From NCBI RefSeq assembly GCF_003704095.1, contig NW_020846122.1:310001-374000 (forward strand): a stretch of DNA of 64,000 bases. Reading direction: 5' to 3'. Shown here in pieces: positions 2,214 to 24,777 of the stretch (position 1 is the first letter of the stretch; each line of letters begins with the position of its first letter). Position numbers and translations under genes: made by a program. The DNA comes from Pocillopora damicornis (taxonomy: Eukaryota). The notes beneath the pieces were generated by a model. That model was not told where the DNA came from. It searched no databases and was given only the letters and a program-made list of their open reading frames with translations.

Positions 2214-3253
2214 AATGGGGGAATGGCTGGTCGTATAAGCCCGATTAAAGCGTATAGAAATGACAACGTTTTCAGTTAGGACAAAATGCTCGTAGTAGCG
2301 TTGGGGATGAGCTCGCATCCCTAACAAATTAAATTACCTTGGACCCTATCAGCTCACGTTTATCGCAGCCTTACGGCAAAAGTTAATTGTGAAACTTGCT
2401 TTTTACCATAATGGAAAGAAATTAGCCGTTAGCTACTGAATGGTCAAAATTCAGGACCGTTAGCCGTTAAACCATCGCCCCATTGAGACCGGCCCTAAAA
2501 AAAGGCAAGAACTTCACCGACAATGTATGGAAAAATAAAAAATCAAAACAGCCAATAGTCGAACCCGTTTTGATATGTTTAATAATATCCTAACACAATC
2601 TGTAAAAAATGAAATGTACAAAAATATTTGTAGTCATAAATTACACCACTCCTATCTGTTATTTCTTGGAAAATATATAAATATTCTCATCCTTTACACA
2701 AGTCTTCCGAGAGACTGGAGGAAGTTGAATTTCATTTGCACTTTGCATATTCCTTTCAATGTATCAAAAGTGTAGTATATGTATTTTACACGTATCGTAA
2801 CCATGTGGGTTGTTGTCATGTTATCATACTAAGCCAATTCCATACGATCTTCACTCTTTTAGATTGCAAACAACGTTTTTTTCAATAAATTTGATTAGCT
2901 GCTTAGAGAAGGTTCATTACGTTTCTTTAGGCAGCTGCGGAGGACTAAATAGCCGGCTGTGCCATAAAGCAAAACGCAAATACGAGAGCTTGCTCGCACG
3001 CCAAACAGACCGCGGTATGAGGACGGATGTTATTGATACCTATACACTGCCACGTGACACCAAAGTTCCTCTTTTCAAACGACTTGTGAAATCAACATGG
3101 AAATAATCAACTTAAAATTGCTATCTTCTATAAGAACGCTCTTAAGGACTGTGAACGAGTGAGCGGGTATAAAACAACGTAATGGAAATGTTTGCCATCG
3201 ATAACTAAGTATGCGATTTATAAATGTATTTACAAAGATTATTTTAAAAAAGT

Positions 3254-5802
3254 CTACTCTGACAAGTTGAGATGGCTACTGGCTGTCCATCTACTGATAT
3301 GCTGCGCGAAGACTCTGTCAAGAAGAGAAAAATGAAGGGAGCGAGAGAATTAAAAGATGTTCCCATATCAACACTTACTGATCCCATAGCTACAATTTTT
3401 AAATAAACAGTTGATTCCATGTTGCCGTGCCTCTGCTCCGTAACAGATCACGCCTGATGTCAAAATGTGGTATGAACATAAATATGGCACGCTAAGCGCC
3501 TCATAACTAGGATATCATTTAATTGCAGTTAAAGCTCCCTCACTTATGTCCAGAAATGCACGCAGTCGCGAAAGTGGCAGATTTGACGAAATTTCGTCAA
3601 ACGGAGTGAATGTTCGTGGATTTGACGATTTTGGGGAATTTTTAGTCAAGATCGTCAAAGCGAAATCAGCTCGGCGGAATTGACGGTTTTGACGCATTTT
3701 CACCATTTTCGTTACTGCATGCATTTCTGGATGTAAGTGAGGGGGTTTTAACTGCAATTAACTGATATCCTAGTTCTGAGGCGCGCCTTGTGCGCCACAT
3801 GTTTATTCTCTCTTTTTTTTACTTCATCTGCGATCTATTACAGAACAGAGGCATATGGCAATATGGAATCTATTTATTTAAAAATAATAATCTTAACGTA
3901 CATAAGATATATTGCGATAAATAGACCTAAATGTGTAAGCCAAACACCACTCTCAATTTACTAAACGCCTGCCGAGTTCATTTCTGCTTCACTGAACTAA
4001 AGGTAATAGTATCATTCAGCATCAAAACATAACTTTTAACGTCTACGACATGTCTCTGTGAAACTCACCTTCTTTCCATTTTTTGAAGCCTTTTAAAACG
4101 CTCTTTATCTTCATCAGTGAGATTTCGTCCTGGTGGACTTTCATCCGCAAATCTTACTCGAAGTTTTCTAGCGAGATGCTCCTAAAACAAAGAAAAAGTC
4201 TTGATAATTTAAATTTTGTAAAGGCGTAAAAACTGGAATATGGAATAGTGGTGAATGAGGTTAGACTCTAGATTAGATATGATTGGTTTAAAAGATAAAT
4301 ATCAATAATAATCATAGATTAATTGGTTGAGTAAACCAGTTTTCTAGATACGATTTTTCCCGATGATTACATCCACACTACGACATTTACTGTACTATTA
4401 TCTCAAAACTATTAATTCAAAATTTAAAAGCATTTTTGAGTAAGTAATGGAAATTGCATGAGTTCCAGCTCATTTTATCGGCACGAGTGATCTTTTGAAA
4501 GCTTTGGAACTGGACGAGTGCAATTTGAAAATATTTCAAAACATGGCTTAAAGCACGAAATCACAAGGAGTTCAAGCTGTCATCTATGCATTTTATTAGG
4601 AACAAAATCACTAGCCAAAGGGAATTTGTACGACGTCGCTGCACGTTACTCAACAAAATAGTTTTCAGCGCTTTAGAAAATGCTTCCACGTTAACTTTAT
4701 GACGATAGCTGTAACACACAAATCGAATATGAAGATTTTCAAAGTTTTTTTTTTAAGTAACATTGTTCAGCTTCAGCTTCAATTTCGAAGAAGTGCACTA
4801 CAGAAATCCGATCTTGCCATCCATAATCTATCTATGCATCGACCAATCAAGAACGAGAATTTTTGAGCACAAATCTATGGCTTTTTAAGTTCGTTTAAAG
4901 GTTTCTTACTCAACCAGGGAGATCCGAATTAAATTTCAAAACGTCTTACCGATTGTCTGCGGGTTGTCTCGAAAGTCTGTGACCTCCTCACGTGGTCAGT
5001 CGTAATCTGAGATTTTGGTTGAATCTAAGTGAAAATCAGCAACACTGTGTTATAGTGACTGTCAGCCTCAGTGGTGAATTCTCAACAGAGAGAGAATGCA
5101 AACCCGAAAAAATGAATAATGACTTGGAAAGAAAAATAACTAGGTTTATTGCAGAAGAAAGAGGAACATAGAAACTCAAGCGCCCAAAGGAAAGCAGAAA
5201 GAAGGAAGAAGTGCAAGTATTGTTACCGTCTGTCTGGTGGGTGTCCGTTCGCATTGTACTGGGCCGATAGCCATACTCTGTGACTTCGCATTTTGGCTGT
5301 GATTTGACTGATCTGAAGGCGGTTGTACTGGGCTGATAATTGTAATCTGGGGCTTTTGTTTGATCTGCACAAGAATTTGTGAGAATTTTGTGAGATGTTA
5401 TATCATCTGTTCCACCCCCTCTGGAATCAAATAGTCTGTCCCCTCCCCCTCAACCCCTCAGGAATCAAACAGTAGAAAAAAACGCTTGCTAACCTTGGAA
5501 CTTCGGCAAACTTACCGTGGTCTCCAAGAGTTTTTTCCTTTTCGTCTCCATCTTCTCGCTGTCGTAGAATTCATTAATCAGATGATTCTGCAACATCTGT
5601 AACTTGGGCAGAAGCATTTGTTTGAATCCCTGGTCACCAGGCTCCACCTCAAAATCGAACTCGTCTTGCCATTCAAGATCGCCAGTCGGTGAGTACCCAG
5701 GAGACAGAGCGCGATAAAGGTCACGTGTGGGTGATGGCGGAAACTCTTCTCGCACTTGACTTGTAACCACTCTCTGTCCAAGCAAACCAGTTTTTTCGTT
5801 CA
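3254..5802 (-). CDS. Cytoplasmic tail exons of the GAIN-domain gene (5 exons)
   Basis: Phase-matched hydrophilic exons [10 protein letters not shown]...KKLLETT / IKQKPQIT...TRQT / IQPKSQIT...RRQS / [17 protein letters not shown]...MER / [20 protein letters not shown]. Linkage to the upstream exons crosses a 500-N gap. Confidence 0.72.
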
Positions 5803-8800
5803 CTGAAAGAATTAATAAAAAGAATAAATGGTTAAATCAGAGAGAGTCGGATATGGTTTTAACAGAAACTTCTTCAAAAGAGTGGCAATAATGAAAACTA
5901 CTTTACGTTAAACTACTCAAGAAATCATAAGTCAATATCACTGAGCAGCGTAGTTCATAAAATTAGGGGTATAGATCATCAGGTGCTATTTTTAACAACA
6001 AATTTTAATTCTGAAAATGAATAACATCTAAGACATGAGGGTCTCAATGGGGTGATGGCTTTTACGGCTATCGGTTAAAATTTTGGCCAATTTCCGGCTT
6101 ACGGTTAACACCTTTCCATTGTTCCCACCAGAGATATTTTTACGGTTAACTTTTTTTACGACTAACGGTTAAAATTTGTCCATTTTTACGTCTAACGGCT
6201 AAATATTTTGGCCGTTTTACGGCTAAAGGTTAACCCCATTGGGACCCTCAGACATGTATCCTATGACCAGTCCAGTTTCACGTGCACTTAGATTTAAAAA
6301 CATTGGGAAATCTTGCCTACGAAAGCCGTGATGTTTGGCGAGTGCAAGGTTGGATAAAGCCGCACAACCCTGTTTATGGCCTTGCGAGATGTAAAATCAG
6401 GAGGAAAATATAGAGAAAGGGAAAAGGCAGTGGCCATATGATTAAGTGCTTATTAACCAATCGGGCCGAACCCACGAATATGATAAAGTTTCATAGCGTT
6501 TCGTCATCATAACATTTTCAGCCAAATATTTTCGCGTCCGACCCTCCCTAAATAAGCACTCAGTATGCTACAGAGGAAACTTGTCTCAAAGACATTACAT
6601 TTTACCACGATTATGTACGATCGCGCCATGAGAGGCATTCTTTCACGTGGTATATTTTGAATTACGGTCGCTATTTTTGAAAAANNNNNNNNNNNNNNNN
6701 NNNNNNNNNNNNNNNNNNNNNNNNNNNNNNNNNNNNNNNNNNNNNNNNNNNNNNNNNNNNNNNNNNNNNNNNNNNNNNNNNNNNNNNNNNNNNNNNNNNN
6801 NNNNNNNNNNNNNNNNNNNNNNNNNNNNNNNNNNNNNNNNNNNNNNNNNNNNNNNNNNNNNNNNNNNNNNNNNNNNNNNNNNNNNNNNNNNNNNNNNNNN
6901 NNNNNNNNNNNNNNNNNNNNNNNNNNNNNNNNNNNNNNNNNNNNNNNNNNNNNNNNNNNNNNNNNNNNNNNNNNNNNNNNNNNNNNNNNNNNNNNNNNNN
7001 NNNNNNNNNNNNNNNNNNNNNNNNNNNNNNNNNNNNNNNNNNNNNNNNNNNNNNNNNNNNNNNNNNNNNNNNNNNNNNNNNNNNNNNNNNNNNNNNNNNN
7101 NNNNNNNNNNNNNNNNNNNNNNNNNNNNNNNNNNNNNNNNNNNNNNNNNNNNNNNNNNNNNNNNNNNNNNNNNNNNNNNNNNNNCGGGAGGCCTCGTCAC
7201 ACTACTGGACATTCCTGATTTTCGATTCCTAAGTTTCATTGAGAAGAGGGAGAGAGATAGAGAGACAAGTGTTAACCATATAATTTTAGACAAATTATTC
7301 TCCTAACCCTTTTACCCGTGAGAGTTACTGGGCACTAATTTCTCCCCATAGCGTCACCCTTGATTCAAATGTTAAGGTCATAATTAAAAGGAAAATTATC
7401 ACCAATTCAAAAAGCGACTAATTGTCAAATAAATTGTTCATGTTAATGTCAAGGCAAATGTAAATATAACAGAGTGGGGAATATGAATATTGATGTTGGG
7501 GTGTAGAGGATTAATTAAGACGGAGTATCAAAGGTCAAGGGTTAATGAGGAACCTCACCAGCTAAAGGACATGTACAGGCCACCAATCACTCCCACGATA
7601 AGCACAGGAATACCAATCCACATCAAAGCCATTGTCCTCTCTCTTTTCTGTTCCTTTTGTGAGACCTGAAATTGTTAGAAAGGAAAGTATTGTCTCTCTT
7701 GGCACAGCCTCGACCTCAGATGTCTTAAGCGCAGGAAAACTCAATTATGTACAATCACTGCCACATACACTGTCCAGAATTATAATTACGCAAGGATTAT
7801 ACAACGAAAACGCGACGACAAAAAGTAAACTCACCTCGTCCGATGAGAGATCCATTAAAACGGCAAAGTTTGACAGATGACTACATTGACAAATTGAGTG
7901 GGTGTGGTTATTGTATGCTAGCCAGCAGCCACGTGATGACCACGCCCCGCCTCTGTGGGGACTGGTGAAATAAATATGAGAGACACTTACTTAGATCCAA
8001 AAGAAACTAATTTGTTGCGTTAAAATTGAGGAAAACAGAAATAAACGTGTCTCATTATCAGTGGAAAGACATTCTCCGATGGCAGAGTGTTTTCATGCGC
8101 TGGACTCAGGATCGAGAAAACTGGGCTCGAACCTGGACCATGTTTCCGTTATCTTAGCCTCAGTGCCTCTTTCTATTCAGGGTTATAAATGGGCGCCCAA
8201 AAGTCGTCCGTGATGGACTAGAATCCCAACCACTTTCAAAAACAAATAGAAAAACTCCTCTTCGCCGCCTGCCAATCTAACTCAGATGAGCCCCGCCTCC
8301 GTGGCACGGGCTTCTCAGTGCGCATGACAAAGGCTTTTAACGTTTACAGAAACATAGATGCTAACGAAATGAATGTTTGTCACAAACATACCTCAGTGCG
8401 TAATCCCAAAATACACATTTAGGATTTCCACGCTTTCGCTGTCAAAAAAAACGAGAAAAGAAATGGTTTATAGATTTTACTACTTGAGTTCATACACTTC
8501 TACAGGTTTCAAAATAAAAGGATGGCATTTCAATTTCCAAACTTTTTTAGACCTTCAACTATTATAAGTGACCAAGAAGGAATTTTTCCTTACAATATAA
8601 ACACGATACCAAGCAGGAATGCAATGAGAAAGAGGAAAAATACGAATAAGGGGATTACTAGTTGATCCAATAACAAATTCTCCAAACTAGCATCATACGA
8701 GTTGTGTGGCAGACAGTAACGAGAATTACTTAAGATATCTTGGGGGTTAAAAGGGATAAGATTGCATGAACCTGCCATCTTACCTTGATGTGACTAAGTA

Positions 8801-11769
8801 CTATAGTAACGGGTGGGGTAATCTTCCCTTGGGGGTGGGGGTGCAGTACCGTTGACATCACTTTGGAATTTGGACCAAGACCAGTACTGTGGGAAGACAT
8901 AAGTAACTTGTTAGCTAGAAACTAACATTGCTCGTGAGTTGTGTTGAAAGTCATGAAGTTCATATTGATCAATTTAATGTAAAGTCTTACCTGACGTTGG
9001 AATCGGGAAGCAAGTAAGGCAAACTTTTAAAACTGATTGTAGCAACACTCACATCTTTTGTAGCTGAAACATGAACGTAAATATTTTCTATTTAGTTGTA
9101 ACCTTTTGCACCCTGACATCAATATGTATATTCTCCATAATGTTTTCTATACGTTTCCTAAGGTGCTGACAAGGAGATTTTTTTAACAATCAAGAGCTTC
9201 TTTTGTCGGTGAAAAGTTCCTTTATTTTTCTGACCTTAATGTTTGATTCAGGGGTGTTATGGTAAGGATAAATTAGATGCCAGTCCCTCTCGGGGGTTAA
9301 AGAGTTAAATTTTAAGATGAATCACACACGCATTTTGATTGGTTCTAACTTGTACTCTATAGGGTGACAGACGCATCGATGACGTCATTAGTAAAATTTG
9401 GCTTTTTTATCATAGCAAACAAATAGATTCCATGTTACAAAGTCCAGTGATAACAACAGTGACAGACACGGCTGCACCTCGTGTGTCACATGTTTGCTCT
9501 TAACAAATTTTGACGTCATCTGTGATCTATTACTTAACAGATGGATGGCAACATGGAAACTATTTATTAATGGTACCATAGAAAATAGGCTTAAAGGGAA
9601 CTGATGTATTCCATTCCTTAAACATGGACTTACTTTGGGCAAACACAGAGGACGGAAGGGCAATGACGTCATGTCTCGCATCCCAGCGATTGACTCTTGG
9701 ATTAGCAAAGTCTGGGAAAGTAAGACCATCATCCCCTGCAGACTTTCTGTCCATCTTAATAACTATTAAAAAATGAAACAATTCATTAACTGAAAATGGT
9801 AGAAAGATAAAGAGGTAGAAGTCAGATTTCTAACAGGAGATAAACAAATGGACAGGTGTACTGTAAGTAAGGACGGACGAACTGCTTTATCAAGTTGGCA
9901 TCCATACACAGATGTCATTCGCGTGTGCTGTACGGTATGTTATAGAAAATGTTGGTCATCAGGGATTTGTAGATAAATGAATGTTTAATCGTTTCTTTCA
10001 TGATTTAAGGTCAGGCTCTCAATTGTTTTTACGTGTCCTATTCATATCAAAGGTATGTGGACAAAACTAGAAGTAGAAGATTATGGGTAAGGTGAAAGTT
10101 CGCTTTTACCGCATTCGTACCCGTTATTCTTGAACTCCTGAAATTTAATAGCCTTTGCTTTGTAAATGTAACTGAATTGCTACGGAAAAGAATTTCTAAA
10201 GATGACTTGGTCAGCGTTAGCCCTTCGTCAAACTTCTTGATAAATTCAAATTATATAGATTATACAGCCAGACTGATAGACAGACAGGAATTATCCTCAG
10301 CCGGGAAATCTTTGAGTGGTGGATATCCCATTCCTGTTAACGGTCCATCACGCGGAGGGATTGTGGTTCTTTGCTTCGTGATAAACCGAGAAAAAATGGA
10401 AATTCTGAGAAGCGATCTGGGCCTCTTTAAGTAAACCTGACTCACCGATATTGTTAGTGATGGTAGGTTCCGCCATATCTTCTCGGGAAAGACGTCGTGC
10501 CGCTTGAAGTGCAAACATTTCCATGGCTCGCAGAACATCCGCTGACCCCGGTTTATTCTATAACAATGCAAATATCAGTTCATGATTCACTAGGTAGGCA
10601 ANNNNNNNNNNNNNNNNNNNNNNNNNNNNNNNNNNNNNNNNNNNNNNNNNNNNNNNNNNNNNNNNNNNNNNNNNNNNNNNNNNNNNNNNNNNNNNNNNNN
10701 NNNNNNNNNNNTTTATTACCTTTTGGATATTGAACCATTCCTGCTGATTTGTCATATCCAGGAGATTACTGCTGGCTCTTACAAAATTCTGATCAGAAAT
10801 GTTGATAAATTATTATCAATTATGATTAAAAAAAAAACAGCTTTTAATTGCATTTCTTAATTTGTGAAATCTAAATAAGAATATTAAATAAATAAAGTAA
10901 TGGATAACAAAGATTTGTATCTTTCAGTCTTTTTTCTTTTTCTCTTGTTTGTATTTCTGCGGTTTAAAAAACACCAATGTTAAGTTCAGACTCTTCCTCA
11001 GTCTTTCCTCCAAAGAACTTGGCGAAAACGCATTTTATCAAAGAGTAGTTAAAAAAAGAGATTCTTAGCATACTTTGCACTCCCTAACGTGATATAATTG
11101 ACATAACTTCTCCCCATAGTTTTAACAACCAGGCATTGAATAGGTTTGCTTTATTTCACCGTTATTTATCAAGCTCGGTTTCGACATCTCGTATCATATC
11201 ACTTTCTCAACCACATCAGGTACAAAATTTAAACCGATCACCGCTTATTCTCTCGCGTCTTCCCGCGCCTCAGGCACTTGTCTGTTTCGTGGAATTCTCA
11301 TTGGCTGCTTATGATATATTCCATTGTTTTAATCGGCCATTGGGATCAATAAAGTTTTGATTTAATGACTCGCTATCGAAATGTGTTTCACACTATGCTA
11401 ACAAAATAAACGCAAACAAAGTTGGCGAATAATGTATATACCTCTACATCCTCTTTGGTCATCTCTAAGAATTCAGTTTGTCCGTTATGCTGTACTATAG
11501 CGGCCATAATATCTGTAGCTCGGTTTAGGTCTCCTCCGAATATCAAGGAATTGTCGATGTTCTGGGTTGTCAGCTGTGACAGTTCCCGTATGAGTGGGCT
11601 GGGGTCAGCTCCAGCGGCAAGCTTTCTAGACTGCAAAAATTTCGAAAGGTTTAAATGCGGAGTGGTTGGAATAATCAGTTTTAAACACTAGGTTTATTGA
11701 AAACTTAACGTCGATATGAGCACACCAGATTTAAAGCTGAGTTATAAGTTGGTTTTAGTAGGGAAAGCC

Positions 11770-11803
<34 letters not shown>

Positions 11804-14800
11804 ATATAACAGGGTAATTTAGTGTTATCAACTGAGTTGATAACACCAATTGGCCATCGTAAAGAGTTTAAAGGCAAGACTCTTTACGGTGGCCAATTTA
11901 CGTTATCAACTCGGTTGATAACATTAAATTACCCTATCATTTGGTTTTATCAACTGAATTGATGGTGTAAATTGGCCATGGTGGAAAATTCATGTTATTA
12001 ACTCAGTTGATTTAACCTACTGAATTATCTTGTAACACTCCCACCGACGCATGCGCAGCACCACAGTTTTCTTTTATAAACCAGCCCCTTTATAAAAGCT
12101 CAGTAGTCCGTTTCGATATGAGGTAAAAAGAACTGTTTTAAATATAGCATAAGCGGCTTCTCCATATCCTCGGTGTAAAGGAAGGGCTAGAAGACATACC
12201 CAGACCTTAAACTCCGTATTTCACCGCACTTATCATTATACCAACACGTCCTCTGCAGGTCCACCTATAAAATCGAACTTCTTTATTTTGCCTTGAGAAT
12301 TCAAAAGTGTTGGGAATGGATTCACTGTGGTCAGAGTATCCCAACATGCGCCTCAGAATATTGTTTTACCTTGTCATAGAGATCTTGATAGCCATTGGAC
12401 ACACAATCACTGAAGTCAGGCGGCATCCATCTTGAATCAGCTTCGCAACGCCGTCTTACAAAACCTAAAAGGTTTAAAAAAGATCAACGAAACGATCATT
12501 ACACGAAATGCAGATATCTGTAGTTTGAAATAACAATAACAATGGTAAGACAGATCATGTGCATCAGTTTTTCTATTCAGAAATACCTTTTGCGCCGCGT
12601 GGGCATGGATGGGCAGAGAAACGCCCAGCAATCGTTTTCTTCCACAATATTCCAAGAGCCTTTTCCATATCACAGACTTCGCGAATTCCTAAAATAAAGA
12701 CAGAGGAAAACGTCCTTTTTATGTGATTACTTAAGTTGTGGCGATGATATTGTGACCGAATGAGAACAAAAAGCTTTCAGTGAGCATCGAGAAGCGAAAT
12801 GGTGCAGAAGCATTCAACAAGCGTCTCGTCATACAACATAACAATTCCACTCGTTTCCAGTTACACAAGTAACAATACATTAAAATAATTTATATTAATT
12901 GTGGTTTAAGGTTTGAAATAGACGACACGTTACTGCAACAATAGCAAATGCGGAAGTAGTGATTAAAATAAGGTCTGAAAAATAATAAGGCTTCAACAGA
13001 ATTCAATACCTTGACGGTTAAAGGTCTAAGGTTCGATAAGTAAATCTTTTTTCTTTGTCCCACCTTCGTGAAAAGACAAAAAAACCTTTTCTTGAGTAAC
13101 AATCATTTAGAGGTCTGCTGCGTAATAAAATTACCTGAAGGAGAGACTTTGTCGTCCCATTCATCGTTCCCATCTTGATCTTGATCGTCTTAAACAGAAA
13201 TGATTTAGTGCTTAGGATCTGTGGTCGTATGCGACCTTTACTTTAACTCTGTAAAAACTTTGCATCCCCAAAAAATATTTCATAAAAAGATTTCGATGAC
13301 AATTGGTTACCTTTTTCTTCGTCACTTAAATGCCTTTTCACAAAACACATCCGAGGACTGAATATATCATCCAGGGACTCGGTGGTCTTGCACGAATCTT
13401 TATCAAAGCAGTTTACGAGAAAGCAAGTCTCTGCAGACTTAAAAGCCAGGTCGCATGTCTTCGTCTGACAGCACCTCTTGATACACATCTCGAAGTCGCC
13501 CACGTCGCCAATGTTGGTAAAGTTTCCCGCCTTTTTCCCTCGCAGTAAAGTGACGTCGTCTGTTGTCTTACCCGCCATGCAAATAGGAGCCCGGTGTTTC
13601 CGATGTTTCTTTCCTGTTTCTGTTTGAAAAAATATCGGGTTAGCTAAATATAGAAGAGAGTAAATTTTGAGCTCGAACGTTTTAAAATCCCAGTAGTACA
13701 TAGAAAGTGCGCCCCATATGAGCCTAATTATGACGCGGCTCTCCACAAAGATCTCTGTAGCTCAGTGGTAGAGCGTCAAAGCGCGGATTTCGGAAGTATG
13801 AAGTTCGAATCGCTAGGGGGAGTCTTAATCTTTCTTTGTCCACGAACGTGAAAAAACTAGAAAAACATTTTAATTTAAACCAGGTAAGTTCTGAACTCAA
13901 ACAATCTACTTTTTACAAGAAAACTTTCTTGGGTTTCCAAAATAAAAAAATGCGTATACTTCCTATATAGCTTTTTTCCTAACAAGAAAACAATCAATGC
14001 TATTCTCAGAACTGTCTCCTGACACAAGATTACTTTAGTTTCATTATTCCACCATTGGTGGCCCTGTTACAGGCATATAACTCGTACAAACTGAAACAAA
14101 AAAATCAACCGTAGGGGCTAGTGAGACCTAGTTTGCTTTCTTCATTCTAATCTCATCTTCCACCTATGTGTAACAGGTTCATGAATCAAAGGGTGTGTGG
14201 AGGATCCTGACTCAGGTAGCATAACAGAGTCAAAACATCTACCTGAAGAATCATCGGATTGAGAGACGTCTCCAAAGTTTGGTGCTGCTGCTGGAGTGTG
14301 TTCAGTGGTTGTCTGAGTGGTTGGCTTGGCAGTAGTTGTGGAGCTCTTTAGTGTGGGCGCTGTAGGCTTGTTGGTTCGATTTCCAGCCGCCTGTTGTGGA
14401 TTGGTACGATCTCCTGTCGTTTTATTTGTGACTTGGTTGGAAGGAGGTTTGGGTGGGGTATTGGTTGTTTGCGGCGTTAGACTGGCATGCTGCGAGGTGT
14501 TTCCTGTAATAATGGGGGACGGGTATAGCTTTAGGGACCAGAACTTAGAATTTTAGAGTTTCTGGAAAGTATCAAATATTTAAGGTATAAAGCTTTCTTT
14601 GGTCAGGAAGTACTCTACCACTGAAAGATAATCATTATACTTCGTCGAATAGGAACATAAATGGGAAAGAACGGAAAGGAATTGATGGTATATTGACACA
14701 AGCAGTCTTCTACATTGGGGCTCTGGATTTAAGTAGATGAAAAATAATACAATGCTCTACCTTGAGAACTTGTATTTTTTTCAGCTTGTCGATCCTCGCT

Positions 14801-17800
14801 CCTATTCGCAGGCCGTAAGATCTCTGACTTTTTCTTTCCATTTTTTTCTTCGTTGAAAAATCCATCCAGGCGGTTTCTATCTTTCAATTGATCCGTGGTG
14901 GTCAAGTTTGTCTTGGGAACTCCATCTTTGTTGGTAGTCGCATTGTGCAATATGTCTTGTTTGACAGTGGGAGCAACTTTGCTTGGTCGAAGGCCGGAAG
15001 TTGATGGAGGAGTGTTCAACTTATCCATAATTTTTTTGATCTGGTTGATATTTGTTGGGCCTGAAACTTGCGATGAAGAACCAGCTGGGTATTTCGGGCG
15101 ATTTGTAGGGTGAAACTTAGTCTGATTAAAAACTTTATTGAAGTTTTGTTGAGCAGGAGGAATATATTGTGATTGAACTCCTGTTGATTGTTGTCCACCA
15201 TCCTGCTTGGTTGCATTGATATTTCTCCACCGCTGCAACCCAGGTGCGGATGGGTTTCTCTGTGGTCCGTAACCACCCTGTTTTAAGTGAGGAGGGGGCC
15301 CATTTTTACTCCAGTCATTGTATTGTTTTTGGTTTTGATCCTCGCGCCCTGCGTGTCCTTGACTAGGATATTGATCTGAGGACCAGTTATTTTTCCCAAA
15401 GCTGTTTTGCGTCTGATCGGGTGGCTTCCACTGTGGATTTGTTGGTTGCCAACGGTTTGATGGATCTTCAGGATAAGGGGTAGGTATCGGTGGCATGCCA
15501 TTGTTGTAGTAAAATTTATTCCACTGGAAGTCTACAGGTTTGTTATCTTGAGATGCTGGCCAAGACGATTTTCTATTCCAGTGCTCGTTATGCGGGTACC
15601 ATCTAGAAGGTTTCGGTCTCCATCTATCATAGTTACCGTGGTGCTCTCTACGCCATTCAGAATATGAACGAAATTTAGACCTTGGCTTATAGTATCCATA
15701 TGGAGCTCTAGAATTGTGATAGTTGTAATTATAATAGTAGGGGTTTTGATTTCCATTACCCCAAAATTCATAGCTTTGCCTATGCTTACGATGTTTGTGC
15801 TTATAATGATTACGTCCCTGGTATTCCTGATTACCTTCACCACCATAATATTGATCGTCATCATCATTATTAGCATTGTAAACGCGCATCGACGCCGAAG
15901 AATCAAACGGGCCCCCAGTACCCTCAAAATCGTGTTGGTCTTTCTCATAGAAGTGATGGTGGTTCTTCCGGTGCCACTTCTTCCAGTGCCTCGGCTTGTG
16001 TTTGGAACCATGATCATAGTGCATCTCGTGGTCTCTGTTATCCTCGTACGGTTTCTCATCTTCATCTATCAGCCGGTGGTTGTGCGCTTGTTCATGTCTG
16101 TATGGAACATCTCCATTTTCATACTTATTCCCTTCAAAATCTTCTTTATTTTTCCACGCAACGCTATCGTCTTCAGGAAAGTGATGAAACTTTTCGTGAT
16201 GATGCTTTTTGTGTTTCTCTTCTCCAGATTCATCATTTGGTCTGCGTTCCTCAATTCTATCACGAGAGGGAATCTCTTCTATTTCCTCACGCTCTTTTTG
16301 ATAATCAGGGATATGTTCATCGATATGTTCCAGGTTTCTTCCATTATCGTCTTCGTTATTCCTTAAAGGATCCCGTTCATATGCTTCCTTATGCTCGTTA
16401 TGTTCCCTATACTCTTCTGTCGTCTTGTCATTTTTCCATTCCGGGCGTTTATGATGATAATGGTACTGTTTATGACTCCTTTGAAATTGTCTTTCATGGT
16501 TATCATTATTAGTTTCTTCATTTTCACCTTCTGCTTCATGATATTCCCTCCATTCCTTCTTCCTCTCTCTGTGATAAATCTTGGATTTTCTGAAATTTCG
16601 TCTATCATGTTTCAAGTTATTCTCCGCCTCAACGCCAAAATGATCACTATTATCATCGTCACTTGCCTTAGATTCAAAATGAGATTCATGGTGCTTGTGT
16701 CTAGATTCCCAATGTTTATGGTAAAAATGAAGTTTGTGATATTCCTTACGATTTCTATTTTTATGATACTCTTCCTCGTTGCTAGCATGTTCTTGTTCAT
16801 GGTAGTTGTGCTTATTCCAGTGTCCGTCAGCATCATGACTTTCCTCTGTTTGATTAGCTTCGTCTTCGTCCTCGTCTTCGGAATCGTCCCCTAAAACTAC
16901 TCTATTATTTTTCTTTCTTTCACTACCGTCGCTATGGTCATGTGCATTATCTTTGTCTTCCTCATTAACTTTGTCGTTGTCTTCTACCTCATCACTGTCA
17001 TCCTCTTTTTCTTCTTGCTTGTTTTCAGAAGATTCATCGGAATCATCGCCATTATCTTCATCGTGAGATGCCCTATGCCGACCTTTTTTAACCACTTCAT
17101 AATTTACGTCTGTTTTCTCTTCTACCCTTTCCTCTTTTTTCTTGTGAGTGTTCCCTCTGTGACTTGTTTGCTTTTTATCATTTTCGTCATCGTCATCACC
17201 CTCATGATTGTCATTAGATTTTTCCTTAAAATGTTTTTGCAGTTTTCTATTTTTAGTATCCTCGTCGCTATCGCTGTCCATTTCGTGCGCCTTAAAGGAA
17301 TTTTTCCGGTTATGGTGATTTTCTCGTGTTTCAGAGCGGTCATCATCGTTTTGAATTTTATGCTTGTGACGGTGATAATGTCGCTTCTTGGCATGGTCTT
17401 TGCTATACGTTATTTTTACTCGTCCAGGAATAACTTTTCCCTGCCAATGATTGTCATCATATTTTATTTTGGGTATATGGTCGTGATCCTTATGCTTATG
17501 GTGGCGTCGATGTTTCATCTTTTGATCATCACTTGAACGATCACTTTCGTCTCGTTCAACATGGTGGTGTTTTATATGCTTCCTAGCCTCCCTGTTATCC
17601 TCACCATCTTCTTCGTTGCTTTCCTTCTTTTTATGATGCAGATGTCCCTTATGTGCACTATGATGGTGATTCTCGTCTTCGTAGTCTTTCCGTTCCACAG
17701 TATTGGCATTATCATGATGCCTATGGTGATGACGCGATTTGCGCTCAGCATTTCGGTGACCATCTTCTTCTCTGGAGGTTCCCTCTTCATCTTCCTCGTT

Positions 17801-20800
17801 GGCATCTTTATCCTTTTCCTTGTGGGAATGATGATGGTGTCGATGGAGTTTGCCTTTGCTCGTTGCCTCACTTTGGTCTTTCTGTTTGTAGAACGATCCT
17901 TTAGCGTCATCATCTTCATCGTTACCATGGGAGTTGTGTTTCCTCTTTTTCTCTGTTCTACTATTATCATGGTTTTTGTTGCTTTTACTTGCATGTTTTT
18001 TATCTTTTCCCTTCGACTTCTTGGGTAAGTCCTTGTGAGGAATATCATTTGACATCATTATATCAAAATCAGCGTCTCCTAAGTCGTCCAAATCAACAGT
18101 TAAACGGTGCTTACTGCTAAGTTTATGGTGCTTTTCACTGGATTTAACTGAAAAATCGATACCATTACTACCACCACTATCGTTCACAAAATGACCCACG
18201 AACGTAGCCTTGGCGTCAGAGGCGTTGCTGTTGCTGCGTTGCTTTGCCGATATATTTACGTGGGAAGTATTTGTTTTTAAAGTATTTATGAATTGATGGG
18301 GCGAAAATGTAATGTGGGAGACAAATGAACGGTTTTCTTTAGAAGATAAGCTCCCTTCAGTAGAGGACAACATAAGGTCTTGATGAATACTGCCTTTTGA
18401 GTCCTTTATACGGTTTCCTTTCTCTGAGGTCGTGGTCGGTAGATGAAATATCGGCGCCCTCCGTCCATGCATACTATTTTGCTTCTTATGTGCGACATGA
18501 GGTTTTCGATGAAAACGCGGAACGTTGTTTTGCAGTGAGTCCTTTGGACTGGTCCCGTACTTTTTATCAACTTTCTTATGAGCCATTACTTTTATCGATG
18601 AACTGACTTTCTGTGCCGTTTTACCTTCAACATTGGAGCCGTTACGCCCGGCTATAACTTTTAGCGTTGTTTTATGCCTAACGGACACTTTCCGATGGGC
18701 ATATTGCATAAGATCACCAGTGTCCTTTATTGTGTAGTTGACATTTGACAACCTACTTTTCGTTTTCGTGCGACCCACTTTTTTGTTTCGCAATGTTGTA
18801 GGCTTCTCATTGTTTTCTGTCAAGGGTTTAACTTTGCTTTGTAAGCGGTGGCCTCCCTGGAATCCCACAAACTCTAGAGATTTCCGTTTCTTTTGGTTGA
18901 TTGCTTGATAACCCTTTCCCATCGATTTTTCCAGACTGGCTTTGCCATTAAGTTTTACCTGTTTTGCTTGATAATTCACAGTCAAGCCCTTCGTTGATGG
19001 TCTATGTGAAGTCGCATTGTCTCCTGTTCGAATGACCTTAGCTTTTCCTTTGCTACGGCGGCTAATTGATTTACCCTTGCGAACTATTCCCGTAGACATT
19101 GCTTTAGGAATAATCTGTGACGCCGTAGAGTTTGCTGCATTTCTGTTAACCTTGTTCCTTTTGATGATTATATTATGCTTATTACCCTCATTCCGTGCTC
19201 CATGAAAGAGCAACGGCTTAGTAGCTATGTCTGCAACGTTGTCTTTTGTTTTCATGAGTCGCCCAGACGAATTTCGGTCACTAGGCTTGGTGTGTTTCAC
19301 TGTGCTATTGACTGATTTCATCTTCGAACGCTTGTGCCCATCTTGAATTCTTTCCTTCCTTACCATCTTGTTGGTTAACAGTTCTGTCCTACCATAATTT
19401 TTCCTTTTCTTGGGATTTAACTTAGCTCTGACATTACTTGCTTTAACATCATGGCTTTCCGGTCGCAATTTACGTGATACTTTGGAACTTGATTGGTTCT
19501 TTATTTTACGAGACTGTTTTAAATCAAAGTGAACTTTCCTAGATTTCATTCTTTTATCTTTTCCTTTTTTGGTGTTCGGGTCCTTCTTTATACCAGACAC
19601 TATGACACGAGGAACTTTTACAACTTTCTTCGAGGTTTGCTTACTATGCACGCTGCTCTTATCTCCATCTGATCCAAGTTCTTCCAAATCTTTAATGAGA
19701 TCAATCTTTTTTCTCGCCATGTTCCCGTTTTTGTCTTCTCCCTGATACAATTTTGGCTTTGTTACATCATGATTTATCTTATATGGCCCATCCCCTTCTT
19801 CCGTGGAACCTACTTCACTTTTTCTACCGTTTTTTCCACTTTCATCTGAATTTTCTGCATATCCACCCACTCCAATATCACTTCCACTCAGGTCGGCATC
19901 ACTCAAATGATGTTCAACCGAACCATCGTCTCTCAGCACCTTAGCATTTTCCATTAAATCACTGCTATGCTTGCTCGAATCGCCACCACTACTATTCAAA
20001 TATTCATGGTTCCCACTCACATCGTCTTCGCCTACTCCACTGAAATCATCATGTACACTGAATCCATGTTCTTTATCGAAATATCCCTGATCTCCACTGA
20101 TATCGTCAAATCCACTTACTCCACTGAAAGCATTATGTCCGCTGAATTCACGGTCTTCTCCAGAATATCTGTGATCCCCACTGATACCATCAAATCCACT
20201 CAATGAACCTTCATCAACACGAGAGTTTCCTTCGTCCGTCCCCCCCACTAGACGTGCAGTGGACCCCTTGTGATGAGTATCGAGCCTTTTCGTACCAATT
20301 TCAAAACCTCTATCGCTTATTCGTGATACCTTTGAACTTTTCCTGCTGGGTTTCATCGCAGTAGTTGTCCTTGTAATTAGCTTCAGATTTTTGACATAAT
20401 GCTTTCCTTTAGGGTTTTCACCAGTTTCTATACTTTGAGTTCCTCGTCTGGTTTCAGCAGCCTTCCAAACTTTTACTGTTGGCTTTATTTTTGTAAATTT
20501 TCCACCTTTAGAGGGGCTCACCCTTTGCGCGAGTGTTGAGCTTAAGTGTTTCGTCAAACTTTTGTTGTTGGAATATATTTTGAATGCTCTGTTTTTGGAA
20601 AATGAAGGAGTCCCTGAAGGAGTCCTTCTACTTGCAACGCCTTTGAAATGAAATGGTACACCTTTTGTCTTAATATCCTTAGTAGTAGGAAATTTGGGAT
20701 GCTTAGTTCTTGATTGATTTGATAGATTTTGTTCATGCCCCATAGCAGTGGGCTGTGCCTCATGTTTTGTAGGTCCCATTGTCGGTATCCTCTTTGAGAA

Positions 20801-23800
20801 TACACTCTCCTTGGCTTTTGCGATTGTTTTTTTTGTATTTGAAAATATTTTGCCAACCTGTGACGTTTGTAGGTTGCCGTTGACTTCAGTTGGCCGAAGC
20901 CTAGGCAGTTTTGTATCTGACGACTTTATATCGCTGTCGTCGGAACCTATATCATCTGGATCTTCATCTCCATCATCCAAGCTTCTAGAAATCTCTGAGA
21001 GAAATAAATTGTTCATCAGTAAATCCAAATTTATACGCAAATGGTAAAGAATTTTACCTTTCCGTGGTACCAAGCAGTTAAAATACGGTTCAAATATTCT
21101 CTACCTTCGACGTTATTTGTCAGAAAGTCTATGGAGGGTCTGCTAAAAAAGCGGCGATGTAATTATAATGCTCAACAATATGCTGTGAAAATCGATTAAA
21201 GAACAGATTGATGCTTTTCTGAGTTCTATCTTGTATGTTTGTATAAATGGCTGGGAATTTCACCAGCTTTCCCACTACAATACAAACCCTCGAAGCAGAA
21301 TTAAAGCATATAAACACAGAAAAAGTGTCTTTGCTTTATGCTTTTTGCTTTTTTTTGACGATAACATCTGGTATTTTCTTTCTGGGGCTACTTCTGTTTG
21401 CTTCATTGCTTTCGTAGTGCGATATAAATATATATTCAATATCGAAAAAGAGCTTTGCCTTTAACCGCTCTACGGTTTGCAACGATATTGCACGGAACTC
21501 ATATTGACTAACCTTTATTTCGATCAATAATAGCGATTTCTAAACCAAGCGTAGGTTCTCGTGTACTATTTGTGCTGTTGCTATCAGCTGGTACACCAGT
21601 AACGCCATAACACTCTTCATCTTCGATGAAAGAGAGCAAGCATTCACGTGATCTACAGCACTGCGTATTGCATTGGCCTTCATCTTCCGACTGCTGAGAA
21701 AATTTGTAAAACTCGCGAGTTGTTCTGGCAGGGAGGAGAAGGACATGAAAGCTGGGTACAAAGCGTTTTGGACACCTCGGGTTGGTGACTTGTGACGTGT
21801 GCCTGATAAAGTCTGTTGTTCCTATAAGTAAAATTCAAATATAATTTCATTGAGTCGTAGTGCTAATATCCAATAATAAAATCAAAACGGGTAAGAAAAT
21901 AATACGTTTGTGACACGAAAAAGACTATGGTTTATAGGAAATAAAATTGTTGTTTGGATTCCATTTAGGAATAAAATCATACGTCAATAAATGCATGCGT
22001 GTTGAGCTTAACCAGGTAACCCTGCTATTTTATGTGATTAAACTGGTAGCTAGCAGCTGTCGACGGTTATCTTGCAGTGCTTTACTTATCGGTGGCAGAG
22101 AAAATTAAAGGAGGTTTCTTTACTAAAAGGCACTTAATGATTTAATTACGAGACTGTAAGAGTGCTCATATTCTCTAGGTGTCAGGAGAGCAGAGGTGGG
22201 ATTTTTCATTTGTAGACGATCACGATGCACCACCTGAACCGGTGTCAATTAATAATTTCACACCAATGTCGAAGCGTACTGGTGATAATAATTACTTTTT
22301 ACAATTTTATGGTATCCTATCGAAACAAAAGGAGAGGAATGGGGTAGACATGTTTGGGATTGGTTAGCAGTTGAATTTAAATCTCAAACTAGGCGATGCG
22401 CTGACGATGCTTAGATACCAAAATGAATAAAGTACTTATCGGTAGACTTCAAAAAAAGCCTGGCGTATTAAGTTTATTTAGTCACTCTTTACGTCTAGCG
22501 TAGGTTCAGTCTTTTGATTTATGTGCGATTTACAAGAGAATTCAGGTCCTACCCGAGGACAAAATTTCGGTATTAGACAGGTTGCATTTTATCAAAATGT
22601 CTTTCAACTACAAGAATTTTAACGCATACATCAAAATATTTGGCACACTCGTCTGTTTTAGGATCACCTCGAACCGCTTCGTTAGTCCTGGAGATCCTTG
22701 AGACGTGTGTTTGAGAGATTTTGTATAGTGCCACCTGTCCGAGCGATAAAATCCTTTCAAAATATTTCACGCAATTTAGCATTTCAATAACACTTTCACT
22801 TGAATAATTTGCACTCTGGCGTGTTTTTCTTCGCAAAGCAAAGTACAAGCCCCCTCAAAAAGCGCGTACATTGCCGTCCGTCTGAGGTTAAAATCTGCAA
22901 TCGTTTATTCTTCCTAAAGTAAGTCTTTCTACGCCAACTGATGAAATAAAAGTAACCCCATCTAACCGTCGTTTTCAACCTTGAAATTCGACCAAATATT
23001 ACAAGGCTTCAAATATGAGAGGAAAAATAGAAACCTAACGCATCCAGAAAATGATCAACAAAGCCTTCGAATGTCGAAAACGTCAAGTGACTTAAATATT
23101 TAAGAGACTTGAAATGTCTTGCAAAAGCCTTGAACAACCCAATCCAAAATGTTATCTTTTAAGATTCCATTTTCCTCATCTTCACGGACGTTTTGATTCT
23201 TTTAATTCCTTGACGATGGCACTCGAAATCTGAGCCTCTTCGCCAATTTTTTTCTTTTGTTCCAAGAAATGTTTATCTGCTTGATTAATTTGATGTGCTG
23301 CAGGCCAAATGTGTACTTTTTGTCGTTTCTGACACTACTGGCAATCGTATAGACTAATCACAATAAGGCTGTGATTGCTGTGGTTGACGTACGTGGAGCA
23401 GTTGGGGAAGGACTGAATTGAATCAAACGATAACTTAAACCTTCCCAGCGTACTGGGGAAGCACTGCATGCACTCATTTTAAAGAAGTCTTTACGTTTAT
23501 TGAAATGAATCAACAACCGAAACATTTTTTATTGTGACGATGAGGAAACTTAATCAGTTTTTCTCCGTCTACCCTCTGGAACGTCAATGAAAAAAATCAA
23601 ATGACAGTTAGCGCTTCGCTTCAAGACACGAGTTGGTTTTTCTTCCACTAAACTCACCTCAAATTGGCATATGGAGTTTTTTGGAGGACGGAAAACCGTG
23701 AACCCGTCGGAAAACATTATAGCTATGACGAGAACCAACAAAAAAACGTGATTTGAAGAGGGAACACCTCTTGGATAAGATCATATACGCCTTTTCCTCT

Positions 23801-24777
23801 CAGAACGTTATATCACAACATAACTAATTTTGCTTCACAAACTTGGAAGGTAATTTTAGGATTTTTAAGGTGACGAAGAGGAACAAGTTGATACATCGGA
23901 CTTAAAATTATGAAGTTAACTTAGGTCACACGTAAATCAAACTTTTCTTCACACTTTCCTAACGACAAAGCAGAACTATAAGTTATGTTGCATGATCTGG
24001 GTATGAAGTACAAAGTCGAAGTTTTAAGCAGGACTAAGAAAATTATTATTGTACTCTCTTTTGCAAAACGATTTGATACATGATACTTATTTTTGAAAAT
24101 AAGTAAATTAGGGCTTGAATATTTTGATACTGTCGAGAGAGAGAGAGAGAGAGAGAGAGAAAAGATATTGTCTTGTTACCGTAAACGTGGTTGCCCGGAA
24201 GAAATCACGCAAGAAAGTTTTAATCAGAAATCAAAATGATATACGAGTTTGTTGTTTTAATTTTTGTTTTCTAAAGCTGGTCAATTTTATCAAATATTTC
24301 ACCTGCATTTCTTGGGTTTCGCTGCAGCTGTCTTTCATCTTCCATTAACAATTTGTCCAGTATCTTGTGGCAAAGTTTCGGCTTGTCGCATGAAACACCA
24401 TAACAATGAAAACCGCGCGAAAGTATCGCCAGTTCGCACGCATCATCTCTACAACATATATCCACACAGTCCTCTAAACCCGTCACGTTTCCAAACTTGC
24501 GGAAATTAAACGAGTTCCTTTTTGCGGTCGATTGCTCTCCCGTGCACGAGTTCGACTGGAGATCGTTGGCCTCTGAGTAAAAATAAAAACAAACGATTGG
24601 AAACATGAAACAAAGTTGGATCTTAACGTAAAGAGCGAAATCCCTTGATGATCACGATTGTATCGAGGTAGTTACAAACAGCGATTCTTTACCGTGGCAT
24701 ACGGTGCATACTGCAAGGAGCCCCAAAATGAAAACATGTGTCCGAAAGCCGTAAGCATGTTGTGTGAATTCCAACAT
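3254..24777 (-). CDS. Giant adhesion-GPCR-like (HRM-GAIN-GPS) protein with three MANEC-like modules, a ~2080-aa low-complexity ectodomain and a single visible TM helix; multi-exon gene, about 3130 aa
   Basis: Phase-consistent GT-AG exon chain: 24777-24693, 24572-24303, 21821-21513, 20994-14761, 14503-14243, 13619-13311, 13188-13135, 12688-12587, 12464-12370, 11630-11442, 10788-10720, 10557-10446, 9762-9634, 9063-8991, 8886-8784, 8438-8392, 7961-7835, 7665-7559, 7228-<7185 (runs into gap), 5802-5516, 5364-5227, 5024-4950, 4181-4069, 3314-3254 (TAG). The GPS motif CVFWD...WSSRGC...[13 protein letters not shown] is unmistakable. Confidence 0.88.
3398..3883. mobile_element. Nested foldback MITE (outer palindromic family around an inner element 3541-3739)
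   Basis: The arms gattccatgttgccgtgcctctg..taactaggatatca..taattgcagttaaa..cacttatgtccagaaatgca are mirrored at the right end. The outer family recurs at about 9380-9570 and 62670-62900. Confidence 0.75.
6037..6249. mobile_element. MITE with TIRs GAGGGTCTCAATGGGG/CCCCATTGGGACCCTC and flanking direct repeat AGACAT
   Basis: TIRs and the 6-bp direct repeat (6031-6036, 6250-6255) are visible; internal ttacggctaacggttaa repeats; partial related copy at about 2370-2490. Confidence 0.8.
6685..7184. other. Assembly gap (500 N) interrupting the first post-TM exon of the GAIN gene; other gaps at 10602-10711, 27385-27573 and 46863-46962
   Basis: Runs of N. Confidence 1.
7303..7514. mobile_element. About 210-bp TTAA/CCCTT-ended MITE (piggyBac-like non-autonomous family)
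   Basis: Ends taacccttt...gaggattaa; close inverted relative at 9098-9308 and related elements at 8548-8759, 52431-52630 and 54712-54925. Confidence 0.65.
7559..7665 (-). CDS. Transmembrane helix exon directly after the GPS
   Basis: [36 protein letters not shown]; the next exon continues [14 protein letters not shown] (positive-inside, polar). Confidence 0.85.
7835..11630 (-). CDS. GAIN domain including GPS autoproteolysis motif (8 exons)
   Basis: [13 protein letters not shown]; [17 protein letters not shown]; [17 protein letters not shown]; FKSLPYLLP; [19 protein letters not shown]; PKCVFWDY; [17 protein letters not shown]|SNFAVLM. Confidence 0.93.
8078..8200 (+). mobile_element. Degenerate tRNA-derived SINE fragment
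   Basis: tggcagagtg..gcgctggactcaggatcgag..gggctcgaacctggacc..cagtgcctct..gttataaatggg, with A/B-box-like head. Confidence 0.45.
8548..8759. mobile_element. piggyBac-like MITE copy
   Basis: Reverse complement of the 52431-52630 element; ends gggggttaaaagggataa. Confidence 0.6.
9098..9308. mobile_element. piggyBac-like MITE copy
   Basis: taaccttt...gggggttaaagagttaa; inverted relative of 7303-7514. Confidence 0.65.
11755..12092. repeat. Foldback repeat built from the ttatcaactcagttgataa / ccgacgcagcaccacagtttctttagaaact family
   Basis: Terminal inverted arms (aagaaactgtggtgctgcgtcggtgggag / ctcccaccgacgc..gcagcaccacagttt) and nested internal palindromes; a single-arm relative lies at 39194-39351. 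Confidence 0.75.
12370..12688 (-). CDS. Hormone-receptor (HRM/HormR) domain, two exons
   Basis: [32 protein letters not shown]|[22 protein letters not shown] matches the C..W..T..G......CP....G...R.C....W..PD.S.C pattern of adhesion GPCR HRM domains. Confidence 0.88.
13311..13619 (-). CDS. MANEC/PAN-like cysteine module 3
   Basis: [67 protein letters not shown]; 309-nt phase 1-1 exon. Confidence 0.85.
13690..13872 (+). mobile_element. tRNA-derived SINE-like repeat
   Basis: A box tagctcagtggtagagc and B-box-like gttcgaatc followed by tail tttctttgtcc..cgtgaaaa; the tail recurs at about 13020-13093. Confidence 0.55.
14243..14503 (-). CDS. Thr/Pro-rich mucin-like stalk exon
   Basis: [21 protein letters not shown]...[18 protein letters not shown]; phase 1-1. 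Confidence 0.8.
14761..20994 (-). CDS. Giant 6234-nt exon encoding a ~2078-aa intrinsically disordered extracellular region
   Basis: Lies within the 2114-aa ORF 14729-21073; acceptor tctcag at 20995, donor G|gtagag at 14760. Contains Ser-Gly repeats, a Lys-rich block, a His/Asp/Glu-rich block and a Tyr/Trp/Asn/Gln/Pro-rich block, with no Cys. Confidence 0.92.
21513..21821 (-). CDS. MANEC/PAN-like cysteine module 2 (degenerate; not in ORF track)
   Basis: Open 309-nt phase 1-1 exon: ...PRCPKRF...[29 protein letters not shown]... Confidence 0.8.
24135..24160. repeat. (GA)n microsatellite
   Basis: About 13 GA units. Confidence 0.9.
24303..24572 (-). CDS. MANEC/PAN-like cysteine module 1
   Basis: [45 protein letters not shown], with C-x3-CC-x4-C spacing; phase 1-1 exon. 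Confidence 0.8.
24693..24777 (-). CDS. Exon 1 of GAIN-domain gene: signal peptide
   Basis: Reads [28 protein letters not shown] with a hydrophobic core. Its phase-1 donor G|gtaaag joins in frame to exon 24572. Confidence 0.75.

Follow-up and report, generated by a model that had tools for sequence, protein, structure and literature searches.

A stretch of 64,000 nucleotides (nt) from the stony coral Pocillopora damicornis (C2757:310001-374000, contig NW_020846122.1; hereafter the window) carries on its minus strand one expressed, single-copy gene that joins the extracellular head of an adhesion GPCR (G-protein-coupled receptor) to a single transmembrane helix and a cytoplasmic tail. The coding sequence runs from about 24777 to 3254 of the window, and the 234,350,878-base assembly of 4,393 contigs was searched genome-wide. 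The predicted product is a type I single-pass protein of ~3,150-3,200 amino acids, a length taken from collinearity with the 3,181-residue orthologue of Stylophora pistillata. Its order is a signal peptide with N-terminal cysteine domains, then a stretch of ~2,080 residues that is charged and disordered, a short Pro/Thr/Ser-rich linker, a KIAA0319_N/MANEC domain, HormR (Pfam HRM), GAIN, the GPS (H-L|S) with its Stachel, a 24-residue stalk, one transmembrane helix and a cytoplasmic tail of ~240 residues. The explanation that best accounts for the evidence as a whole, and in which we place considerable confidence, is a single-copy gene for a single-pass (1TM) HormR-GAIN protein of adhesion-GPCR descent, with an output that would come from cleavage and from the tail or helix.

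The membrane-proximal exons lie, like the rest of the gene, on the minus strand. The GPS exon (7835-7961) contains the cleavage triad H-L|S and the Stachel core S-N-F-A-V-L-M at 7879-7853, matches the Pfam GPS profile with E = 5e-12 and was recovered by the six-frame genome scan at C2757:317856-317957. It is joined in RNA (7665<->7835) to the exon at 7559-7665, whose translation gives the charged stalk and the one helix that spans the membrane; this helix bears a glycine face (GxxxG) and reaches a 19-residue Kyte-Doolittle maximum of 2.29. A polar juxtamembrane exon follows at 7185-7228 (RNA joints 7228<->7559 and 5802<->7185) and continues for 6 nt into an assembly gap of 500 N at 6685-7184. 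The tail is encoded by exon 1 (5516-5802; the conserved proximal segment with SP sites and Y-x-x-L), exon 2 (5227-5364; polar, poorly conserved), exon 3 (4950-5024), exon 4 (4069-4181; a conserved RVxF-type motif and a basic helix) and the last coding exon (3254-3314), which is joined to exon 4 (3314<->4069) and ends in a TAG stop at 3256-3254. RNA joints connect all of them, and they are hydrophilic and phase-matched, none exceeding -0.02 in an exon-by-exon Kyte-Doolittle scan. A sequence-only reading of the window had described HRM, a complete GAIN domain and HL|SNFAVLM at these positions, one hydrophobic helix, polar and hydrophilic phase-matched exons up to the stop at 3254, and no further transmembrane-coding exon between 7228 and 3254. 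The domains and the site are present as it stated (by reading of the sequence, the Pfam GPS match and partial HRM and GAIN matches), and the hydropathy scan and RNA joints agree with the rest.

Transcript evidence came from Logan contigs of four runs from three studies, which were aligned to window positions 3200-8100. Single contigs from three polyA runs of two studies (X1, X2 and X5; 3,631, 1,145 and 1,462 nt) cross all junctions between the GPS exon and the 3' untranslated region (UTR), each at CT..AC borders (GT..AG on the coding strand) and in frame, and the conserved stop is followed by ~550 nt of 3' UTR. A further contig, X9, from a run of the third study, shows three joints, including 5802<->7185 across the gap. 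The tail exons 5802-3254 were thus found spliced in frame to the GPS and transmembrane exons, against the possibility, raised with the earlier reading, that they belong to a different gene. RefSeq or GenBank models likewise place them together with these exons in one protein in Stylophora, three Acropora species, two Montipora species, Desmophyllum and Nematostella.

The 500-N gap deserved particular attention since the polar exon runs directly into it and assembly gap sizes can be placeholders, so that an ordinary seven-transmembrane (7TM) adhesion GPCR might have its TM2-7 inside the gap or have lost them by misassembly. At the joint 5802<->7185, just 6 letters lie between the two sides in 4/4 runs. 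One nucleotide (7185), these 6 and two more (5802-5801) make three codons, so the frame is kept across the gap, and the aligned orthologues of at least seven species carry exactly three residues at this position and no 7tm_2 domain. As only 6 transcript nt fall inside the gap, TM2-7 cannot be hidden there, which settles the earlier concern over its true size; the remainder of 6685-7184 is intron, whatever the true length of the gap. Moreover, the helix is followed by a long, polar segment with proline, where a class B receptor would be expected to have a short first loop. We consider a concealed or misassembled 7TM body to have practically no chance of being correct. A second gap of 110 N (10602-10711) lies between GAIN exons: the donor gtaataaa (10719-10712) abuts the gap, the acceptor is at 10559-10558, and every orthologous protein joins the two flanking exons directly without loss of a residue, so this gap is also intronic.

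A 7TM region elsewhere on the contig was sought with the Pfam 7tm_2 profile, and none of the 150 matches listed, of 174 in the genome-wide six-frame search, lies on C2757. By an approximate, by-eye cross-tabulation with these 150 matches, ~45 of ~62 strong GPS exons elsewhere in the genome have a 7tm_2 exon 0.3-2.2 kb downstream, in contrast to the present gene, where 4.6 kb of transcript follow the GPS without one. The genome contains a single copy of the tail exon, and the genome search gave no close paralogue of the HormR/GAIN-A part. These results bear on the proposal that the 1TM transcript is one isoform of a Cirl-like gene that uses 7TM exons elsewhere on the contig. Adhesion-GPCR 1TM isoforms are common and rare variants drop out of contig-based RNA evidence; against this stand the lack of 7tm_2 on C2757 among the listed matches, the conserved stop with its 3' UTR, and the predicted RefSeq isoforms X1-X3 in Stylophora, Acropora, Montipora and Nematostella, which have one transmembrane helix or none and all lack a 7TM region. 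We judge such an isoform extremely improbable. In-frame RNA contigs, one-helix orthologues and the contig free of listed 7tm_2 matches instead support the claim of the sequence-only reading that this is a dedicated 1TM GAIN gene and not a splice variant; the 7tm_2 or PLAT exons in the gap that would have spoken against that claim did not appear.

Several other strong GPS exons, selected by eye, also have no listed 7tm_2 match nearby (C629:12223, C4119:8114, C4184:93959, C3840:22542 and 27272, C2476:18458 and 72964, and C4347:71580). These may represent contig ends, pseudogenes or further non-7TM GAIN proteins.

Queries with the giant exon and the Stylophora C-terminus identified RefSeq models in Stylophora (LOC111332124; 3,181 residues), Acropora millepora (LOC114975600), A. 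palmata, A. muricata, Montipora capricornis, M. foliosa and Nematostella (LOC5517900; 3,629 residues), all full-length versions of ~3,100-3,650 residues; that of Desmophyllum is partial. Tail exon 1, used as the query of an exhaustive HMMER search, gave 10 homologues with E <1e-10, two of which were looked up by name, Desmophyllum pertusum KAJ7390600 (944 residues, partial) and Nematostella EDO45883/A7RRT9 (862 residues, partial), the rest being unnamed fragments. The two weakest matches of this search, bacterial Ig/PQQ repeat proteins, were rejected as chance. Where scanned, the orthologues contain KIAA0319_N/MANEC, HormR, GAIN (E = 4e-27 to 4e-31) and GPS (E = 5e-15 to 2e-17). Exactly one hydrophobic segment follows the GPS in 18/18 GPS-containing database proteins, and after it comes a tail without a known domain. 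No 7tm_2, PLAT, REJ or channel domain was found in the orthologues by Pfam, either in our own scans of four proteins (which also gave no PKD_channel or SEA match) or in the precomputed database lists for the others. Comparison of the tail with other cnidarians had been suggested as a check, and by these sequence comparisons the GAIN-1TM-tail architecture is conserved across Hexacorallia, in robust and complex stony corals and in the anemone Nematostella.

The database names of these proteins are 'uncharacterized' or 'GPS domain-containing', and two GenBank records wrongly call them CELSR2 and ADGRB1. Some records therefore label as seven-pass receptors proteins that are not. Among individual entries, Stylophora PFX24105.1 has one helix only after the GPS, and Acropora cervicornis KAK2551612.1 is a fragment without GPS motif or helix. 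The predicted isoforms A. millepora X3 and A. muricata X2 end immediately past the boundary of GAIN exon 6, which leaves out the last GAIN strands as well as the GPS and the transmembrane helix, and would be secreted ectodomains with an incomplete GAIN domain.

Conservation is unevenly spread along the protein. Between Stylophora and Nematostella, the seven Stachel residues are 100% identical, the transmembrane helix 92%, the stalk 88% and the proximal tail 74%, followed by HRM and GAIN (63-66%), the distal tail (40%) and the middle tail (10%). The nine residues H-L-S-N-F-A-V-L-M are invariant in 5 species, and the four GPS cysteines and the tryptophans are invariant in all species compared. 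The helix keeps a proline and a glycine face, with G at helix positions 7, 14 and 18 (GxxxG; G>A in the anemone). Since a plain anchor would not need a conserved glycine face and proline, we infer that the helix makes a sequence-specific contact within the membrane. The proximal tail retains the SP sites, the Y-x-x-L motif and an acidic-aromatic block. Further along, the RVxF-type motif that had already been noticed at window 4143-4169 recurs in the form [KR]-x(0,1)-V-x-F in all five aligned species, from Stylophora, Desmophyllum, Montipora, Acropora and Nematostella, with the basic helix after it. The C-terminus is conserved among the scleractinian orthologues, and the anemone protein extends beyond the conserved motif.

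The head of the protein relates to adhesion GPCRs in both sequence and fold. The closest sequences to the Nematostella HormR-GAIN region are BAI3 (4DLO, 9e-35), CELSR1, BAI2 and latrophilin-3, and beyond the orthologues the most similar proteins in the databases are 7TM receptors of latrophilin-like and ADGRD-like type with ~24-37% identity. An AlphaFold model of the Nematostella HormR-GAIN region, built from an 11-sequence alignment, has a predicted confidence (pLDDT) of ~70-90 over residues 21-360 and shows six helices and then a beta sandwich with the Stachel as last strand; in the remainder, a single long helix passes through the membrane segment, and the tail is mostly disordered and has two helices. 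The best structural matches to this model were BAI3 4DLO (TM-score 0.78, E = 3e-23), BAI2 8OEK (0.80), CELSR1 and latrophilin-1, within a range of 0.70-0.80 (target TM-scores, crystal constructs). In the phmmer alignment to latrophilin-3 (ADGRL3), the similarity runs through the stalk into TM1, with W-[IV]-G-I in common, and the BLASTP alignment to a Limulus latrophilin-like receptor ended at the Stachel, short of TM1. As only the phmmer alignment reached TM1, homology of the helix to TM1 is suggestive and not proven. Taken with the domain order, these matches make it likely, though not proven, that the gene descends from an adhesion GPCR of the BAI/CELSR/latrophilin type, in which TM1 was kept and TM2-7 were replaced by a new tail.

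Compared with receptors of the ADGRB/BAI, ADGRC/CELSR and ADGRL/latrophilin groups, the coral protein has the same HormR directly before a complete GAIN domain, the same GPS H-L|S and TxFAVLM-type Stachel, a fold close to that of BAI3 and BAI2, a first helix that aligns with ADGRL3 TM1, and a large multi-domain ectodomain. It differs in having no TM2-7 and hence no G-protein coupling by itself, and in its tail, which is unrelated to any known domain. With respect to class B2 adhesion GPCRs, the GAIN and GPS before the membrane and the H-L|S/T and Stachel consensus are present, as read from sequence, and the 7TM region is absent.

Placement in the polycystin-1/REJ branch, alongside the sea-urchin REJ proteins, was weighed against this descent. 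The SpREJ proteins of the PKD1 family have 1-11 transmembrane segments with a GPS before the first (PMC1934368) and are a precedent for GPS-bearing membrane proteins without a 7TM region. They differ in carrying a REJ module and lectin or PKD repeats and no HormR, and the scanned coral and anemone orthologues gave no REJ, PKD-repeat, PLAT or C-lectin match; neither a PLAT/LH2 domain after TM1 nor the further transmembrane segments or channel-like domain of polycystin-1 proteins were found. HormR stands directly before GAIN as in BAI, CELSR and latrophilin, and all top sequence and fold matches are adhesion GPCRs. Membership of the polycystin-1/REJ branch is accordingly very improbable. The existence of SpREJ and of the 1TM form of Cirl does soften the general statement, made in the sequence-only reading, that GAIN domains normally precede either a 7TM region or TM1 with PLAT: a GPS before another kind of membrane anchor has some precedent.

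The closest functional precedents are isoforms of adhesion GPCRs. In Drosophila, the 1TM form of Cirl binds the 7TM form and is required for mechanosensing (Bormann et al., bioRxiv 10.1101/2023.01.11.521585), and mouse GPR126 is described as also making 1TM isoforms (bioRxiv 10.1101/2023.01.11.521585; Cell Rep 2025, as cited in PMC13197933). Like the coral protein, these isoforms consist of a GAIN ectodomain anchored by TM1 alone, in their case with an alternative intracellular region of ~200 residues, and they show that such a form can function, as partner of a 7TM form. Unlike it, they arise by intron retention in a gene that mainly encodes a 7TM receptor, whereas the coral 1TM protein has its own single-copy gene with spliced tail exons, conserved across Hexacorallia, and none of the listed 7tm_2 matches on its contig. 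The coral gene would thus be the stand-alone counterpart of the Cirl 1TM isoforms, with a logic closer to that of a separately encoded RAMP-like subunit; the authors of the Cirl study themselves note the likeness of the 1TM form to RAMPs, which are encoded by separate genes (bioRxiv 10.1101/2023.01.11.521585). A 2026 consortium review mentions, under single-pass forms, only the Cirl isoform. Our literature searches returned only the Cirl isoform work and the REJ family, and no paper on a stand-alone HormR-GAIN-1TM gene family was found.

In architecture, the protein also resembles SEA-domain transmembrane mucins of the MUC1 type, which have a very long disordered ectodomain, a juxtamembrane autoproteolytic domain, two chains separable by force, one transmembrane segment and a short signalling tail. 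It is unlike these mucins (background in PMC10556640) in that its predicted autoproteolytic domain is GAIN and its giant region is a His-rich charged polyampholyte with 18% S+T+P in place of Pro/Thr/Ser-rich tandem repeats; neither such repeats nor a SEA domain is present in what was scanned. As the giant exon is a polyampholyte rather than a mucin, the comparison holds for architecture and not for composition.

The intact triad, cysteines and tryptophans make autoproteolysis likely, and from sequence the GAIN domain probably cleaves itself at H-L|S. A huge N-terminal fragment would then remain non-covalently paired with a small C-terminal fragment made of Stachel, transmembrane helix and tail. 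If the long ectodomain is pulled, the N-terminal fragment could come off, and a stub of 24 residues would stay on the helix. Output would pass through the conserved tail, by way of the proximal SP, Y-x-x-L and acidic-aromatic block and of the distal motif, a putative RVxF-type docking site for phosphatase-1, followed by the basic helix. Alternatively or in addition, the near-invariant helix, with its glycine face and proline, could contact a membrane partner sequence-specifically. Ectodomain shedding, presentation of the Stachel in trans and signalling by the tail had each been put forward as functions before this analysis, and all three are plausible from the sequence.

Two other accounts of how the protein works were considered. 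The GAIN domain might stay uncleaved, which would make the protein a one-chain adhesion or glycocalyx molecule whose HormR-GAIN part is only a rigid membrane-proximal stalk for the giant charged ectodomain. The ectodomain is indeed huge and disordered, and conservation of the Stachel can be explained by a structural role, but H-L-S, the four GPS cysteines and the tryptophans are invariant in all species, and the transmembrane helix and proximal tail are better conserved than GAIN, which a passive anchor does not need. We regard this one-chain molecule as unlikely. Equally doubtful in our estimation is a separately encoded RAMP-like subunit, whose C-terminal fragment (Stachel, near-invariant TM1-derived helix and tail), once GAIN had cleaved and the N-terminal fragment was lost, would dock by its helix on a 7TM adhesion GPCR or other membrane partner and give the tethered agonist in trans or tune the mechanosensitivity of the partner. 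If it were true, the 1TM/7TM principle of Cirl would have become fixed in a pair of genes, from the common ancestor of stony corals and sea anemones onward.

A number of observations weigh against the favoured account of a cleaved 1TM protein that signals through its tail or helix. Cleavage here is a sequence prediction, and not every GAIN domain with a good consensus is cleaved; BAI2 was crystallised in the uncleaved state (title of 8OEK). The strand formed by the Stachel also belongs to the GAIN core, so that its conservation is no evidence of agonist function. The tail is modelled as disordered and has no Pfam match in the window exons or the orthologues. A search of the ESM Atlas with the C-terminal fragment of an orthologue likewise gave no usable feature match, and its structural neighbours, with TM-scores <0.3, are meaningless as matches. 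The tail motifs are short and could be chance matches, though their retention spans a long evolutionary distance. Outside Hexacorallia no orthologue was found, in databases whose coverage of other cnidarian proteomes is uncertain. Of the 174 genome-wide 7tm_2 matches, the remaining 24, which are weak, lie outside the 150 listed, and the RNA evidence consists of assembled contigs and not of single molecules, so that rare isoforms would be missed.

Upstream of the GPS, exons were located by reading the sequence and by stop-to-stop frame translation, with AG/GT borders at the HRM and GAIN exons. Window exons were searched singly, and full-length analyses used database orthologues in place of joined exons. 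By tblastn, the Stylophora protein is collinear with the window from 24777 to 3257, with 80-97% protein identity over the exons. Its residue 1 maps to 24777, where a start codon (24775-24777) opens a frame with a signal-peptide-like hydrophobic stretch; the signal peptide and N-terminal cysteine domains were placed through this mapping, and a signal-like hydrophobic segment is found at the N-terminus of both the Stylophora and Nematostella orthologues. The giant single exon (14753-20995) is a stop-free frame of ~2,080 residues, 69% identical to Stylophora, that probably encodes a disordered ectodomain. It is highly charged and His-rich (K+R 19%, D+E 16%, H 7%, C 0). Within it, residues 1001-1800 (window 15930-18050) contain 10-17% His and 17-32% Asp+Glu, and strongly basic blocks lie on both sides.

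The exon of the KIAA0319_N/MANEC (MANSC-type) cysteine domain (13303-13623) directly precedes HRM and was identified by a tblastn segment of 92.5% identity and by PF23597 and PF07502 in the orthologues. HRM lies on two exons with splice sites, 12587-12688 (AG/GT borders; Pfam HRM profile positions 2-35) and 12370-12464 (positions 39-66). With the domain divided between them, each of these window exons matches the profile only in part (19.6 and 15.9 bits); the intact domain scores 33.7-39.5 bits in the orthologues. GAIN occupies seven exons between 11630 and 8392. Exon 1 (11442-11630; helical subdomain A) has a weak Pfam GAIN match and 91% identity to Stylophora by tblastn. It is followed by exon 2 (10720-10788; GAIN profile positions 50-73), whose donor abuts the 110-N gap; the exons on either side of that gap are adjacent in the orthologues. 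Exon 3 (10446-10557), exon 4 (9634-9762; 95.6%), where beta subdomain B begins, exon 5 (8991-9063), exon 6 (8784-8886; 92%) and exon 7 (8392-8438), which holds the first GPS cysteine and tryptophan, were each placed by tblastn and splice sites.

Three introns near the 3' end contain other elements. Between the transmembrane and polar exons, window 7300-7515 is an interspersed ~210-bp repeat with at least 40 copies of 70-75% identity on many contigs and high RNA depth in one run. In the intron after the gap, window 5990-6310 shows a very high RNA contig depth (maximum 733), and its contigs have numerous internal joints and loose ends; it is a multi-copy element with short taaccgt-type units that is transcribed from elsewhere and lies outside this mRNA. 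In the last intron, at window ~3510-3775, an element resembling a miniature inverted-repeat transposable element was recognized by eye, with terminal inverted repeats of ~50 bp.

What GAIN and the Stachel do apart from the 7TM region, through 7TM-independent or trans functions and 1TM isoforms, is a long-standing question of the adhesion-GPCR field, and in model animals the two parts are hard to separate because one gene encodes both. The coral and anemone gene is a natural separation: it retains HormR and GAIN, together with a cleavage site and Stachel that are invariant and a helix like TM1, but has no 7TM region. As the genetically tractable Nematostella carries the gene, the receptor-independent outputs of GAIN cleavage or Stachel exposure are testable there, as are the binding partner of the conserved helix and the coupling of the giant charged ectodomain to the interior of the coral cell. 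Kept in other stony corals and in a sea anemone, the arrangement offers a natural case for the function of an adhesion-GPCR head without the receptor body.

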